Below, in pieces: positions 5,356 to 64,000 of a DNA stretch of 64,000 nt; position 1 is the stretch's first letter; every line of letters starts with the position of its first letter. The DNA is from Guillardia theta CCMP2712. Its lineage: Eukaryota > Protista > Cryptophyta. Under the pieces are notes generated by a model, which was not told the DNA's origin, made no database searches, and worked only from the letters and a program-made list of their open reading frames with translations. Location of the stretch: NCBI RefSeq assembly GCF_000315625.1, contig NW_005434673.1:210270-274269 (forward strand), in the 5' to 3' direction. The translations under genes were made by a program, and so were the position numbers.

Positions 5356-7056
5356 TCAGATAACTTTGTCCAGTGTGCCCAGGTGCAGCAAAACCACCCA
5401 GACGACGCCTGAGGACGGCAAGTTAGTGACCAGTCATGATGCAATCCAGTCCAGCGGGCCTCACCCACAACCACAGAAGATGCGGAGGACACGAAGATGA
5501 GGTAGAATTGCACCTGAGACAGAAGTTACTCCTGTCATCGACCCCTCAACATTCTACCCTGCTGGTGGATCCTAATCTCGAAGTCAGCTCCCCCCAGAAG
5601 GCCGCGAACACACCCATTGTCTGCTATGGCGTCAGCAACGAACACTCGGGCAGGTAGGAGAGACCAGGATGCTGGTGAAGCAGAACGAGCCAAGGTAGCA
5701 CGTGGACTTCACCGCATCGTGCATCGACACCTGCACGACTGTCCATCAGCCATGGAGTCTGAGGTGCAGGTGCAGGAGGGTCACCGCTGGAAGGACGCCG
5801 AGGATGCCTCCAGGTCCAGCTATGCCGTGAAGGATTCCAACGCCGAGCTGTGAGATCAAATCGTCATAGAGGCCAAGATCATGTGCAGCGATGATTTCTA
5901 CCGATAGAATCTTTTGGCCCGTGGCGTTGCTTATCAACAGAATCTTGCGGCAGACGCCACAGGAAAGGCTCAAGCCGCAGCATCTGATGGCGGATTCAAC
6001 CCTTGAAGCTCCGACCGATGACAAAGATACCTCGTCGAATTTGCTGAGCTTGTGGTGTTCCCATTGACGATCACTTCGAACGCGTAATCCTTCGACTCTA
6101 CGTATCTGTCAAGTGAACGACTTCACTTGAAAGGACAAGTACCATTTTTCTGAAAATCAGCCAGGAGACTCTGACACAAACAATCTCAGGGGTGGAAGAC
6201 ATACAAATCAAACGATAAGATACAGCACCTCTGATTCTGCATCCACGTCCATGCCTGATTCAATGTCTGCATCGCCGCCTTCCGACACAAGCTCGAGCTC
6301 CTTTGAGTTCCCGTCAAGGGCAGAGTTTTCATTCTGACTGACTTGCACGGTCTCACTTCTGAACAGGCTCCTGGTCAAAAACTGTCGGCAAGGCCCTAAT
6401 CATGTGTACCTGTAAGCTCGGAAAATCCCAACTGCCCCCAGCACAATCATAAAGACACCCACGAACTGACAACGAAAGCATCAAATCTCATGCTAGAAGT
6501 CTTTACAAGTCTCACCAAATCAGCGACGTAGTTCAACGCGCTCCCTTCTCCTATGATTCCCTTCCCCATGTAGATGAACACAACGAACATTATCAACAGC
6601 CCAATGCTGCAGGTACCAGTCACACACCCCACCCTGCCGTCCCGCTCCCACCACAAGTTCCTACCTGTGCCCCACCCCCCATCGCATCCCCAGCCAGAAT
6701 GCCTTGTAGCTTCCTCCCACTGACAGCGTCACAATGGCGCTGATGTGATCAGGCCCAGTGAGCACGTGGATCAGGCCAAGGGTCCCTCCCAGCAAGCACA
6801 ATGAGACCGGGCCCATCCTAGCGGTAGGAGACTTCCTCGGAAGCTGGCTCCCCATATCCTTTGCTGGTCTGTCATCCAGCCGGATGTCGGAACCATCGTC
6901 CGTGACGAACGAGCGGACGCCATACTGCTTCACAGTCCTGGATGTCCTATGGCTCGTATCTTGTGGGTCCTCCCCGTTCAAGGGATTCACCAGCACTGCA
7001 AGCAGCAGCAGCAGCCTCAGCAAGGATCTCAAGCTTCCGGCTGAAGCTGAGAGCAT
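5356..7056 (-). CDS. Nickel/cobalt permease (NiCoT/UreH-type) with N-terminal signal peptide, multi-exon
   Basis: GLIHVLTGPDH (HX5DH-type metal motif), GMRWGVGH, GVGILHGIAG. Spliced C-terminal TM exons end ...LGTLDKVI* at 5356. Confidence 0.85.
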
Positions 7057-7321
7057 GGTATTCCTCAGCCAATCGCCCTAGTCTCAACTCGGTAGCATTC
7101 TGAACAACTCAGGTGGACTTAAAAGTGGAGAACTGTTGGAGCCAGGGAATTGTCTGTCCTCTTTCTCTCCGACTCGTCCTCCTTCCAACGTGGTGCTCTC
7201 CTCTCTCCCCAGAGCTATATCTCCTCTCCTCTCTGTCCTTCCTCCTCCTCTTCACGCCATTTCGTCGTTCCGTGCCATCCCTGCGTCATCGCCATCAACC
7301 TTTATCCTCAACCCTAGAACC

Positions 7322-7358
7322 CTTTACTCAAAGTTAAGTTAAAATCAGTACGAGGACA
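7322..7358. repeat. Dispersed conserved motif, copy 1 (CTTTACTCAAAGTTAAGTTAAAATCAGTACGAGGACA)
   Basis: Identical to 62718-62755 apart from one extra A in copy 2. Confidence 0.92.
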
Positions 7359-7784
7359 ATCAGGAGAGTCGAGGAGGCTTGACCCTGACACTGTCGCCCA
7401 AACGGCGAGAAGAGAAAAGACAGCGAGAACCAAACCTAATCCTGCCGACTGCTGTCCCCCAAGCTTAACTGATACCTTCACTTAACGGCGCGCAGGACAA
7501 GTCCCCCGCGCGGCAGCGATGTCGCGGTGGCCGCCGCCGAAGGAATGAGACGCTCCACCTGTTCCCATACCCCCTCTATACTACCCCTCACATTACCATA
7601 TCACCCCCACTTGAACTTCATATACCCCTATTTTACACCATAAATATGTCGGTATTCTCATCAGTGTACCCACCCACCATACAGGGTTGATCCACCCCTA
7701 CCCTTCACTCACCCCTCTCATCTTATAGACTAAATTATTTACTCACACTAGTGCAAAGTCGAGGGCAGCGATAAAAGGTTCTAG

Positions 7785-8083
7785 GGGAGCAGGGAGCAGG
7801 GAGCAGGGAGCAGGGAGCAGGGAGCAGGGAGCAGGGAGCAGGGAGCAGGGAGCAGGGAGCAGGGAGCGAGGGAGCGAGGGAGCGAGGGAGCGAGGGAGCG
7901 AGGGAGCGAGGGAGCAGGGAGCAGGGAGCAGGGAGCAGGGAGCAGGGAGCAGGGAGCAGGGAGCAGGGAGCAGGGAGCAGGGAGCAGGGAGCAGGGAGCA
8001 GGGAGCAGGGAGCAGGGAGCAGGGAGCAGGGAGCAGGGAGCAGGGAGCAGGGAGCAGGGAGCAGGGAGCAGGGAGCAGGGAGC
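7785..8083. repeat. (GGGAGCA)n heptamer minisatellite with an internal (GGGAGCGA)n block
   Basis: Direct reading. Confidence 0.97.
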
Positions 8084-8229
8084 ATTGATAGAAAAGGAAG
8101 AGGGGAAGGAAGAGTGGCGGAAGCAGGGAGCAGGGAACGAGAGCGATGAAACGAAGGGAGGACAGGAACTGACAGGTGTCAGAAACCATGGCCTACGAAA
8201 CATCGCCGACCCGAACATGACTTGCGGAC

Positions 8230-41839: not shown

Positions 41840-43645
41840 CTACTGCTTGCTGATCGCCTCAAGTCTCTTCATCTTCTCCTCCAACCTCTTGCGTATCGAC
41901 TGACGAGAAGCTTTCTTAGCGACGGAGACGGAGACAGACACTTCAGTCCCTTCCTTGACACCTGCAAGGGTGCGTAGGATGACGGAGTCGCTCGCCAAGG
42001 ACACGAGCATCGAGTCCTCCGGAGTCACTTGTACCTCCACCCCGAGGGGATAGAACCACTTCCCACTGGCGAAGATCACAGTTGCATCTCCCTCCACCCC
42101 CGACGAGCTGAAGGTGAGCTGGAAGTTGCCAGTGGAGGGTTCGAAGGAGTAGCTCGAGATGTTCCCTGCTACCTGCTGTGGGTACGTGCGGGCGATCAGC
42201 CGCACCTTGCCCTCCCTAAGGGAGCCGTCGGTCTGGTTGTAGAACCCTTCCTCCACCGTCCCGTCTGGCTCCATCGCTTGCGTCGTAGGATCATGATAGC
42301 TCTTGAACTGCCAGTACGTCCATGACTGTGCATGACGGTCGGTGATTTCTCCGATCTTGTCCGCCATGGCGCTGTCCACGGGCCCGTCGTCGATCATCGC
42401 TCCCCACTCGGTCAAGAAGCCAGCGACTGAGAGCTTCTCCAAGTCACCCTCGATCACGTTTGACAAGTACTTGTCAAAATAGGCGTTGCACAGCTCCGTG
42501 TTGGCCGGCTGCCCATCCCTCGTGTTGTAGAAGCAGTACATGTGGTAGCTGAAGACCTGGCGGTCGTTGTACTCCGCACCCCCTGGCCCGGCCGACAGGC
42601 CCGTCCCCGAGAGGCTCTTGAACGGAGTCTGACTCACTCCCACAGTGGCCTCGAAGAAGAGCAAGTGCCGGTCGTCGACCTCCCGCACGGCCTCGTGCAC
42701 TTTCTGGTAAAACGACTGGAGGTTCTTCTTGTCCGCCTGCCGGATGTCCAGGAACTCGGGATGGAGGAGGATGTCGCCGAGGAAGGGCTCGTTCAGGATC
42801 TCGTACCCGATGACGCTGCTCCTCGTGGCGAACCTGCCGTAACAGCTCAGAGCAGGGGCAAGAGGAGGAGGAGGAGGAGGAGGAGGAGGAGGACAAGGTG
42901 GACTAGGACGAGGTCTTAAGGAGCAGAAGGCATGCGGGTAGGACGTCAAGGGGGAGGCAGACCTCTGGGCTACGACCCTCCAGAAATTGACGAACTCGTC
43001 TTGGATCCCGTCGTAGTTGTCGTAGAAGGCCTGGAACGCCTTGCCGACGGCGTCGGAGAAGTAGTATCGGAAGAAAGCACTTTTGTAGCACTCGGAAGGC
43101 AGAGGATAGCCGGTCTCCGGATCTACCTCGTACTCGTGCCATGCTGTCGGGATGGGAAACTTCTCCGGCCTGACGCCCTCAGAGACATTGGTGTATGGCG
43201 TTGCCCAGTCCGGGAAGCCATTCCCGCAGAACTTCGGGGAGAACAAATCCTGATGCGCGTCCAGGATGGTGTAGATGCCGCTCGTGGCGAGGACGTCGAC
43301 GATCTCTGCGATCTTGTCAAGGTAGGTCTCGTTGACTTGACCACGAGCAGGGAAGACTCCGGGGAGAGCGACGAGGAGGCGAACGACGTTCACTCCCATC
43401 GCCTTCATGTCCTGTACGTCCTTAGCCACCAGAGAGTCCACGGGGTCGAAGTGATCGGTCTGCGGGTGGTAAGGAGGGAGCTTCGAGACGACGTTAACTC
43501 CATGGAAGATGACTTCTGCTCCTTGCTCGTTCACCAGCCTCCGCCTGTCCGGGTCCACACGGACCCACGGCAGACTGCCATGGGCGGTGGGCAGCCACAT
43601 GAGCGCGGCTGTGGCGCAGAGCGCAATCATGAATGTCAGTCGCAT
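41840..43645 (-). CDS. Secreted GH5 endoglycoceramidase-like glycoside hydrolase
   Basis: Signal peptide; FHGVNVV, ILDAHQD, GYEILNEP (acid/base), FLTEWG (nucleophile); one in-frame intron at ~42834-42962. Confidence 0.92.
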   Translation of the reverse strand: MRLTFMIALCATAALMWLPTAHGSLPWVRVDPDRRRLVNEQGAEVIFHGVNVVSKLPPYHPQTDHFDPVDSLVAKDVQDMKAMGVNVVRLLVALPGVFPARGQVNETYLDKIAEIVDVLATSGIYTILDAHQDLFSPKFCGNGFPDWATPYTNVSEGVRPEKFPIPTAWHEYEVDPETGYPLPSECYKSAFFRYYFSDAVGKAFQAFYDNYDGIQDEFVNFWRVVAQRSASPLTSYPHAFCSLRPRPSPPCPPPPPPPPPPLAPALSCYGRFATRSSVIGYEILNEPFLGDILLHPEFLDIRQADKKNLQSFYQKVHEAVREVDDRHLLFFEATVGVSQTPFKSLSGTGLSAGPGGAEYNDRQVFSYHMYCFYNTRDGQPANTELCNAYFDKYLSNVIEGDLEKLSVAGFLTEWGAMIDDGPVDSAMADKIGEITDRHAQSWTYWQFKSYHDPTTQAMEPDGTVEEGFYNQTDGSLREGKVRLIARTYPQQVAGNISSYSFEPSTGNFQLTFSSSGVEGDATVIFASGKWFYPLGVEVQVTPEDSMLVSLASDSVILRTLAGVKEGTEVSVSVSVAKKASRQSIRKRLEEKMKRLEAISKQ

Positions 43646-43980: not shown

Positions 43981-44377
43981 GAGGCAGGACTACAACCTCT
44001 GCAGTGACGGCCGTAGGGAACCGCCAGTATATCCAGTCCTTGCAGGAACGAGCTACTTCTCCTTCGATGACGATGGCTTCCTCCTCCCTCGTCCCTCCTC
44101 CCCCTCCTCCCTTTCCTCCATCAAAAAAGTTTGTTTCGTGTCCTCCGGCTCCAATTTCGCTCCGCCTCAGAGCGGAAATAAGCGCCAATGCCGCAATGGG
44201 CTCGCGACGGGAGGCACCTGAAGGTGAGAGATGGGATGGGCGGGAAGGGACTAGGCGGAGGAGGAAGGAGCGAGGAGGAAGCCATCGTCATCGAAGGAGA
44301 AGTAGCTCGTTCCTGCAAGGACTGGATATACTGGCGGTTCCCTACGGCCGTCACTGCAGAGGTTGTAGTCCTGCCTC
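43981..44377. repeat. Perfect 106-bp inverted repeat (43981-44086 / 44272-44377)
   Basis: Arms are exact reverse complements on manual comparison; ORF track shows the same peptide on both strands. Confidence 0.92.
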
Positions 44378-61200: not shown

Positions 61201-62538
61201 TGGAGGGATGCTCTACGACGAAATTTGTTGATGTTTCCCTTCAACCATGCACTGAAGAGGTTGTACTTCTCGTCCAATGGAAGGTCCTCTGTCTCCTTGT
61301 TCTCTGAGATCAGCTCCGACTGGTTTGCTCCAATAAGATCGCAGAACTCATCGAACGACACCTAGCAGAATCCTTATAAGATGCCGTTTCAAGTTAGAGA
61401 AAGATAGCCTCCGACCTGTCCGTTTCCATCCAGGTCCGCGGCTAAAGTAACAAGGGAGCACATAGAGTCAGTTGGAATGGAGAGAGCACCCTCCAGGTAC
61501 CTCGCATGATCCTCCTAACTTGTACTTCGTTGACGTTGGGCAGGTAGAACTGGATAGCCTTCTGTAGCTCGTTCATGTCGATGAAGTCTGAGGAAGGAAG
61601 TTACGATCATCTAGAGTTCATCCAGGGCTGCGATCATGCGCAGCGAGAGCACTCACTCGATTGATCGATGTCAAAGTGGTCAAAAGCGGCCCGCGCCTTG
61701 ATGAGCGGGTCGGACTTGATGGCTCCTTGCTGCACCATGAGAGCAACGAACTCGGAGAACCCGATCTCTCCTCCACCGTCCTTGTCCACCTCCTTGACTA
61801 TTGCCTCGAGCTCCGTCATGTTCAACTTGACTCCACAGGATTCGAACACCTGTTCAGGAGGTGAGAACATGACTGCTGCATTGACGGTGACAACTTGACA
61901 AGTTACCTTGTTGAGCTCCAACACGCTGATGTTGCCTGATCCATCCTGATCGAAGACCGAGAAAGCCTTCCTCATCTCTCCTACATCCTCAACGTGCAAG
62001 CCATACATGCTTCCCAACTTCTCGTCTGAAAAGTTGTCCGGGTCGGCATGCCTCAAGTGCGGGTTCACGAAACTTCCTTCGCTTGGTTGTGTGGAGACCT
62101 TGCTTTCTCGCTCGTCAGCCTCTGAATGTCGCGGACTCCAGGCTCCGTGAAAATATTCTTCCTGTTTCTCCTCCTCCTCTCCATCACCATCGTCATCATC
62201 ATCAGGGATGTAGGGTTCATCATCGTCCTCATTTTCTTCTGAGTTGGGAACGCTGTGCTCTTCTAGCGTTCGTTCTTCCACTTGATTCTCCTGACTGTGT
62301 TGTTCTTGCATCATCCGCAAGATCGCCAAGTCATCCTGAGCCAACCCTCCTGACCGCATTTTCTCCCTTGTTGCTGGTGGAAGAACAAAAGTTGCAGGAC
62401 CGACCTGGAGGTCAACCCCGGACACCAGCTACTGGTACCGCCACGACCGACTTGAAGGGACTTCAGCTACTGACTGGTTCTCCTGCTCTCTCCTCCATCT
62501 TCGCGCTCCCCTTCTCCTCCTTCTCCCCCCGCCCTCCG
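55231..62538 (-). CDS. Giant calcium/cyclic-nucleotide sensor-like protein: EF-hands + C2 + ARM repeats + cNMP-binding + IQ
   Basis: DQDGSGNISVLEL, DKDGGGEIGFSEF; C2 (KLTFYVYDDPD...IGLLEVTIGEII); ARM-like helices; cNMP (VLRQGQ...LYIILSGEIEV...WGESAL); IQ-like AAITMQRMLRR. The 536-aa and 1208-aa ORFs join through a ~58-nt intron at ~58927-58984. Confidence 0.85.
60723..60792. repeat. (GGGAGA)n intronic microsatellite
   Basis: Direct reading. Confidence 0.95.
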
Positions 62539-62717
62539 CCTTCCTTGCCCTCGGGCATACCGTACGCCGTTGGGGGTTGACAAGGGTAGGGGTGGGGTGG
62601 ACCAAGTCAATCGGACGGGTGGGGTTCGGTACCTAATCTGTTGGTGACCACCTCCCCCCTCAGCTCCAAGTTGATCAATTGCCAACCATGATTGCCAACA
62701 GAATTGCCAACCTGAGT

Positions 62718-62755
62718 CTTTACTCAAAGTTAAGTTAAAAATCAGTACGAGGACA
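62718..62755. repeat. Dispersed conserved motif, copy 2
   Basis: Matches 7322-7358 with one extra A. Confidence 0.92.
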
Positions 62756-62919
62756 CTTGCTGCGAACCCTGCGCCTTTTACTCTGCGCCATGTTGCGCTG
62801 AAGGGAAGGAGGGGAGGGAGAGCGAGTCGGGAGGAGAGGAGAGATGGGGAAAAGAAGAGGGAAGATGGGAACGAACAGAGAGAAGAGGTCTCGGTACCGA
62901 GGTCAAGACCTTGCGCAGC

Positions 62920-64000
62920 ATGGCAAGGCTGACAGGAACGACACCGCTCAGCAAAAGGGCAGGTCAGGGCTCTGGCTCCTTGGGGCAGCCCAGCGGTCCT
63001 TGGGCATCAGGATCCAAGGGGAGGAGCAGAGCAACAGGAGGACTCTCGGAGCAGCGAAGTACAGTGAGTCGTCATACATGCTGTTTGAGAGGGTTGGTTG
63101 ACAAGGCCCATGTAAGGACTGACTTCCTTCCTGTCCATTGAGACCCTGTGGCTCTGGGTCATGGGGTTGTCAGCGGAGAGTTTTGCAAACACCTTTGCCG
63201 TTATCTTGATGGAGCCCTTGGCTTTCGTCTCTACATTCTTGCACGATGTGATTGCTCCTCTCATCTGGTTGTGCGATTGCTGATCTTGTCACGAGGCAGA
63301 CCGATCACACGGTCACCATACTCAATCTGACCGGCTCTGCACTCGAGGAATGTGCGTGTGGACTCGACATGCTTCTCCTGATGGGTTCGATGACCAGGGT
63401 GCAATCATATGGTTTGCGGAGAACAAAGTTGAGTTCAAGAACCCCCCTCTCCTGCTCGTGATTCGTTCAGGGTTGACCCAACATGAAAATAAGCAAGTAC
63501 AAGTCTCGTTCACCCGAGCGACAGGTTCTGTTCTGTGTGGACTTCTCTGGCAGCTGTGGTGGTAAATCAGACACGCTGGTGTGATTCATGATGTGATCGA
63601 GGTCTCTGCTATGACAGGAGCAAGCTGCTCGTTCCGACCTTACATTCGAGCATGGGATGAGGTGACCATTGATAAGCTGTGGCAGAAGTCGAAATGAGAT
63701 GAGAGATAGATACATCTCTTTCATGTTGGCTCTTGGCGTGCTTTTCAACATCCTTGGAAGGCAGTTTGCTTCATTGATACTTGCACCACTCTTGGAATCT
63801 CATGACATGATTCGTCGCAACGGGAAAAGGGTAGATGAAGCGTTTGCAGCGGCAGGAGCCTAAGACATAGCTTGCCTCACAGATCGTGGACTTGAGTGAG
63901 ACAGTCTGGGACGACCTCCTCTTTTACGCGTGCTTATCAATTGTACTGCTGTGAACCCGAGATATCCTATGCTGATGACCCGCAACTTGCAGATGCTTGC
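62920..64000 (+). CDS. Multi-exon hypothetical protein, probably truncated by the window end
   Basis: ATG at 62920 followed by short exons between ~50-nt GT-AG introns. Confidence 0.4.

Follow-up and report, generated by a model that had tools for sequence, protein, structure and literature searches.

An ultra-short, high-copy interspersed repeat with one fixed and one variable end in the genome of Guillardia theta

Analysis of a 64,000-nt stretch of the Guillardia theta CCMP2712 genome (the whole of which is referred to here as the window) revealed an element that is an ultra-short, high-copy and recently spread interspersed repeat. In the nuclear genome, its loci number at least in the hundreds and probably in the low thousands. 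The data point to a retroposition-type origin, which was not among the candidates put forward in the original prediction made from the sequence of the window. We regard it as about an even chance that the copies are very short retro-copies of the 3′ end of a minus-sense RNA. The two copies within the window are as follows.

7322-7358, plus strand: core of copy 1, 37 nt, A4 form, an exact 37-mer
7359-7367, plus strand: right-hand extension of copy 1, ATCAGGAGA, common to many genomic copies
62718-62755, plus strand: copy 2, 38 nt, A5 form, identified by sequence match, with its right end cut and without ATCAGGAGA

The claimed recurrence of 7322-7358 at 62718-62755 was confirmed, with both copies lying on the same strand and differing solely by one extra A in the A-run. 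Their flanks are unrelated, as had been claimed, because local alignment of 300 nt on each side stops at the element edges. In agreement with the earlier reading, no target-site duplication is visible at either copy; these are the only two genomic copies at which flanks were read directly, and a small local word repeat around copy 2 blurs the comparison there. In 100 shuffles of the window, no match to the whole-element pattern is expected by chance, and for 12- to 17-nt pieces of the element the expectation is 0.04-0.4, while each piece was found exactly at both copies; the right-hand piece additionally has scattered near-matches with 1-3 mismatches elsewhere in the window. No further partial or diverged copies were detected in the 64 kb down to 62% identity or to 12-nt pieces, and, one local inverted repeat aside, the element is the sole complex dispersed repeat of at least 18 nt in the window. 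An A-rich or simple-repeat tail is absent from the copies. The dyad symmetry and mini-hairpin that had been pointed out are indeed present as letters, but were given no weight because either strand folds worse than its shuffles (z = +1.1 to +1.6).

The size of the family was estimated from four public runs mapped onto window positions 61400-63900 around copy 2. Two of the runs, X3 and X1, are DNA and come from separate studies; X3 was recognized as DNA because introns and intergenic DNA are evenly covered at a depth of 58-72, and X1 because one of its contigs passes unspliced through introns. Nearly all mapped contigs of the four runs concentrate on positions 62712-62757. In X3, 997 contigs mapped, almost all of them on this interval, and the summed depth reached 512,943 at position 62733 versus 58-72 on the single-copy flanks, whereas X1 contributed 558 contigs and a depth of 30,220 versus approximately 6.8 on the flanks; such summed contig depth is an indirect copy estimate, in which overlapping k-mer contigs overcount up to about threefold and organellar sequence is possibly included. 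The expectation that two copies in 64 kb betray a large genome-wide family is therefore supported by distinct contigs, numbering in the hundreds, that carry the element in both of the independent DNA data sets, and by a depth ratio that suggests thousands of copies.

Other contigs with 255 nt of unrelated flank terminate on the element, and contigs of 6-17 kb contain it internally, so that the copies are genomic. A large satellite array was ruled out as the source of the depth, since contigs at the junctions of tandem pairs have depths of 63-175, about that of single-copy DNA, and the depth thus derives from dispersed copies. The count is limited to near-identical copies (at least 95% identity), and among these the family is homogeneous, with a second letter at only three positions, in each case with a small share of the depth. 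Patterns of 22-24 nt from the element had no exact match in IMG/VR, in JGI metagenome contigs or in 185,579 prokaryote species (one genome each). An adaptor, a vector or a prokaryotic contaminant was rejected on the grounds of these missing matches in prokaryote, viral and JGI collections and of the presence of the element in three independent studies and its embedding in long contigs. Searchable papers on the repeats, introners and non-LTR elements of G. theta do not describe the element.

The two edges of the element behave differently. On the left, loose contig ends fall only at 62717-62719 (26, 10 and 14 contigs in X3, and 18, 12 and 11 in X1), and the letters beyond this edge are random and differ between runs. 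On the right, loose ends occur at 62740/41, at 62753, at 62755 and about 9 nt further, and doublets of the element add right ends at 62739, 62742, 62748 and 62754. Beyond 62755, the consensus of the loose ends reads ATCAGGAGA in three runs (X3, X1 and X5) and is random thereafter. Because copy 1 and many genomic copies share this extension, the full unit was set at approximately 46 nt (7322-7367), and copy 2, where the extension is missing, was taken to be cut short on its right. The loose-end consensus has no common sequence beyond about 46 nt, and most copies therefore appear to end at nearly one point. The element thus has one constant and one variable end, as does the tail of a truncated non-LTR retrotransposon.

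Same-orientation doublets were present in at least 33 contigs, whereas random spacing every 10-30 kb would by our own estimate yield about 1 chance doublet per 1,000 copies. In the 12 doublets displayed, 0-39 nt separate the units; the left unit ends at 62739-62755 or inside the ATCAG extension, and the right unit starts at the normal left end, 62714-62719. One junction is a perfect tandem, in which ...ATCAG is followed by GAGT and then by the next unit. No strand-changing joints were found among those listed for any run, and terminal inverted repeats are absent, as direct comparison showed that neither half of the 46-nt unit is the reverse complement of the other.

Target-primed reverse transcription is favored as the source of the element because one constant edge, one variable edge and head-to-tail doublets of this form are the expected products of that reaction. 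According to the proposed mechanism, reverse transcription would be primed from a plus-strand nick just left of the element, which would fix the left edge within 1-3 nt, and micro-homology at priming would fit the 1-3-nt wobble of that edge. The RNA would be copied from its 3′ end (minus strand ...TTTGAGTAAAG), with synthesis proceeding rightwards and stopping or switching template after some 25-46 nt, thereby creating the variable right edge. If the enzyme switched to the 3′ end of another RNA copy, head-to-tail doublets would arise, in which the left unit is cut on its right and the right unit has a normal start. Insertions would occur, or be retained, in the narrow gene-free centres of divergent promoters, where the DNA to the left is rich in pyrimidines and that to the right in purines. 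R2-type reverse transcriptases are known to jump between templates, and the head-to-tail pairs of the element resemble the outcome of such jumps. The reverse-transcription mechanism and the minus sense of the RNA are inferred, as is the existence of a parent LINE or a source RNA, neither of which was found. The element is probably an ordinary, though unusually short, by-product of retrotransposition.

Among known systems, the closest resemblance is to extremely 5′-truncated non-LTR retrotransposon insertions, which likewise have one fixed and one variable end and comprise very short, near-identical copies, in hundreds to thousands, with unrelated flanks and, in the present case, one orthologous site that lacks the element (described below). 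The element differs from them in that no parent LINE was found, most copies seem to stop at about 46 nt and no target-site duplication was seen. These differences speak against retro-copying: 5′ truncation of a long element is expected to give a broad spread of lengths, whereas most copies appear to end near 46 nt, and neither window copy has a target-site duplication or an A-tail. A parent element with a reverse transcriptase was not found, the loose-end consensus sharing nothing beyond about 46 nt, and no reverse transcriptase, transposase or Rep domain was found in 10 large open reading frames of the window.

Several of the same observations bear on an origin at the DNA level, namely a miniature mobile element with a fixed left end and a variable right stop, which could be a rolling-circle or other non-TIR fragment, or tandem monomers spread by recombination or circular DNA. 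The discrete unit of about 46 nt, the perfect tandem junction, the fixed left and variable right ends and two TTAA words in the core are all in line with such an element. We nevertheless consider it unlikely, as the halves of the unit share no inverted-repeat similarity, strand-changing joints are missing among those listed, the single-copy depth of the tandem junctions leaves no source satellite, the left flanks (…AACC and …GAGT) break the A|TC rule of Helitrons, and no transposase or Rep gene was found among the 10 large window ORFs. The element shares with MITEs its shortness, its lack of coding sequence, its abundance and its position near gene starts; it differs from them in having neither terminal inverted repeats nor a visible target-site duplication, in its asymmetric edges and in being shorter than a typical MITE. 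The original prediction rightly placed the length of the element above that of a single binding site and below that of a typical MITE. Its suggestion of a transposase or recombinase end is not supported, given the absence of inverted-repeat termini, the unrelated halves and the lack of a strand-changing joint among those listed, and its alternative of an excision footprint is implausible for a 37-46-nt sequence in thousands of copies.

The surroundings of the two window copies were compared with regard to their neighboring genes and to short ENA metagenome contigs of a close Guillardia relative (PRJEB17505), of which L001 and L002 (samples ERZ930064 and ERZ930071) correspond to the two loci at approximately 94% identity. 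The relevant features are listed below.

6664-7056, minus strand: first coding exon of a signal-peptide membrane protein, left of copy 1 (ortholog ORF P0003, 96% identical)
61637-62359, minus strand: ORF of an EF-hand protein, left of copy 2 (EF-hand_7, 7.5e-12; ortholog P0001)
62780-63829, plus strand: spliced transcript right of copy 2, with its ATG at 62844 (RNA contig, run X5)
62672-62807, no strand assigned: intergenic stretch of 136 nt around copy 2 without a counterpart in L001, which has 48 unrelated nt instead

Both copies had been described as lying some 180-270 bp upstream of a minus-strand gene start, with a plus-strand gene starting on the other side. The distance holds for copy 1, which is 266 nt from the ATG at 7056, and not for copy 2, which is 359 nt from the ATG at 62359; both ATGs are backed by ORF calls in a relative. 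As for the opposite gene, the spliced RNA contig from 62780 provides it for copy 2, whereas no gene was recognized in the 2 kb right of copy 1, where the GA-rich polarity by itself suggests one. The RNA contig of the plus-strand gene starts 25 nt past the end of copy 2, which places this copy in a true head-to-head promoter. At both window copies, pyrimidine-rich DNA lies to the left and purine-rich DNA to the right within gene-free cores, and contigs from other loci similarly show CT-rich DNA directly left and GA-rich DNA directly right of the element.

The same region contains further details. Six introns, of 48-56 nt each, interrupt the plus-strand membrane-protein gene at 62780-63829 within about 1 kb, and one of its splice joints, 63345/63396, was reported with non-GT..AG ends, at a position that is ambiguous by 3 nt. 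At 62775-62783, 20 nt right of copy 2, CTTTTACTC is similar to a T4 variant of the element's initial 8-9 nt. This T4 variant of the element start is also present in other contigs, and CTTTTACTC may be a tiny second stub or may be due to chance.

Between the contigs of PRJEB17505 and the window genes, identity amounts to about 94% at the nucleotide level and 94-96% at the protein level, and protein word searches returned these orthologs together with one Hanusia phi transcriptome protein; the accession PRJEB17505 was found in none of the searchable papers. L001 aligns to window positions 61839-62671 and 62808-64000 and keeps both genes, and no trace of the element was detected at the L001 site orthologous to copy 2. 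The difference consists of 136 nt replaced by 48 nt rather than of a clean empty site; an insertion polymorphism in the form of a replacement was thus found, at one site and in one relative. At the locus of copy 1, homology to L002 is lost approximately 160 nt upstream of the ATG, and the contig ends near the expected position of the element. Because the element is absent from the orthologous site in L001, it is no conserved part of the copy 2 promoter. The proposal of a conserved chromatin boundary or origin element likewise conflicts with its absence from this one orthologous site of a 94%-identical relative. The relative's contigs in PRJEB17505 also offer a resource for empty-site tests across the genome. 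Left of copy 2, at 62680-62712, the window carries three ATTGCCAAC words, and L001 carries three TTGCGGAGC words in the same place (around 1226-1273); the repeated word seems to have changed in concert and may represent a binding-site cluster.

The promoter setting raises the question of a selected cis-regulatory module of divergent promoters, whatever its origin, acting as a TATA-like core or a transcription-factor cluster, with the AT-rich centre about 35-50 nt upstream of the right-hand transcript start. This fits the gene-free cores and the shared pyrimidine-left/purine-right polarity of the two window copies, the CT-rich left and GA-rich right sides in contigs from other loci, the start of the plus-strand RNA contig 25 nt past copy 2 and the near-identity of the copies. 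The relative, however, keeps both genes at 94% identity and lacks the element in the orthologous promoter, and near-identity over 37-46 nt in thousands of copies marks recent spread rather than a binding site. Selection also poorly explains truncated copies and doublets, copies are found within transcripts in both orientations as well, and the one known transcript end is a contig end rather than a mapped start. A selected promoter module, which would be compatible with a mobile origin of the element, is accordingly rated as quite unlikely.

A more specific version of retroposition, which we hold to be similarly improbable, would make the unit of about 46 nt a self-standing retroposon, with a tiny RNA as the template for the enzyme of a resident LINE acting in trans. 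It would always insert in one orientation, at the point where divergent promoters switch from pyrimidines to purines, and its AT-rich centre would there serve as a TATA-like box. SINEs and other non-autonomous retroposons resemble the element in being discrete, short, high-copy units that have no coding capacity and may need a partner's reverse transcriptase. Unlike SINEs, the element lacks a tRNA-, 5S- or 7SL-like head as well as internal pol III boxes and an A-tail, nor was an abundant RNA seen. To our knowledge, its length of about 46 nt is well below that of SINEs.

An introner-like element, that is, a mobile sequence creating new introns, is very unlikely. The unit size is close to that of G. 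theta introns (about 50 nt; 48-56 nt in the neighboring gene), and a GT in the left flank (GAGT, at copy 2 and at the tandem junction) together with the CAG of the extension would give GT...AG in about 46 nt. Against this, both window copies lie outside known transcripts, copy 1 lacks the left GT and copy 2 the right CAG, and no splice joint was detected across the element, which RNA contigs contain unspliced.

Transcription of the element appears to be passive. Only 29 of approximately 20 million raw RNA records touch it; their orientations are evenly split and 27 of the 29 are parts of other transcripts. RNA contigs contain the element internally and unspliced, with flanks of 180-255 nt on both sides. 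These reads within other transcripts, in both orientations, and the position of the element inside RNA contigs led us to conclude that it is passively transcribed. Within the window, Rfam gave 0 matches at gathering score; with E values of up to 10 allowed, a single match, to a chance-level lncRNA (E 9.3), overlapped the element. A possible likeness to the sarcin-ricin loop of large-subunit rRNA and to U5 loop 1 was rejected, as no LSU, U5 or other rRNA or snRNA match was obtained at E up to 10. The suggested small-RNA template is thus not borne out, given the low RNA signal in both orientations, the missing fold and the lack of an Rfam match.

The spliced leader of G. theta is the 17-mer CTCGGCGGCTGGTCAAG, with 20 gene copies (Roy 2017, PMC5619915). 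It had 0 matches in the window with up to 2 mismatches allowed, and the sequence of the element differs from it, so that this candidate was discarded. The genes for the spliced-leader RNA resemble the element in being a short conserved sequence at several genomic sites with abrupt edges, and differ in sequence and in number, with 20 copies versus hundreds to thousands of the element (PMC5619915). The element also has no Sm-site-like U-run after a donor, and joints between it and mRNAs were not seen. A small-RNA gene or a fragment of one, whether for a spliced leader, a snoRNA or another RNA, could be read into the minus strand, where ...TTTGA|GTAAAG resembles a splice donor and two CTGA words occur, but is extremely unlikely in view of the different 17-mer that is the known leader (PMC5619915) and is absent from the window, the missing Rfam family and fold, and the 29 reads in both orientations, nearly all within other transcripts.

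Other features of the window were recorded in passing. Positions 1-756 are a hexamer satellite of CTAGCT/CTAGAG-type units that reads as one long palindrome, with arms of about 374 nt and 86-89% complementarity; a long (GGA)n run comes next, at approximately 830-900. At 7784-8090, 430 nt right of copy 1, about 44 tandem 7-nt units AGGGAGC are accompanied by a block of AGGGAGCG variants. An inverted repeat at 43981-44377 sits just beyond the start of a GH5 cellulase-like ORF (41840-43645, minus strand); its arms, each about 106 nt long and including exact stretches of 58 and 62 nt, are some 185 nt apart. Of the 31-mers sampled from 6300-7750, 6-20% occur in metagenome runs from lake water, freshwater and wetland, which is odd for a marine alga; these matches may reflect conserved parts, carry-over or a freshwater relative.

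A repeat as short as this escapes standard repeat finders, and naming it aids the annotation of the G. theta genome. The element breaks short-read assemblies at each copy, where public k-mer contigs end, and it can mislead motif searches in promoters. If the copies are aborted or template-jumped reverse transcripts, they would suggest that retrotransposition in G. theta usually stops within a few dozen bases. Should the unit be a self-standing retroposon as outlined above, it would have rewired core promoters in G. theta at hundreds to thousands of genes since the split from its 94%-identical relative. If a consistent orientation and spacing with respect to transcript starts is established for the copies, the family would exemplify promoter turnover on a mass scale, driven by a mobile element, in a secondary alga.
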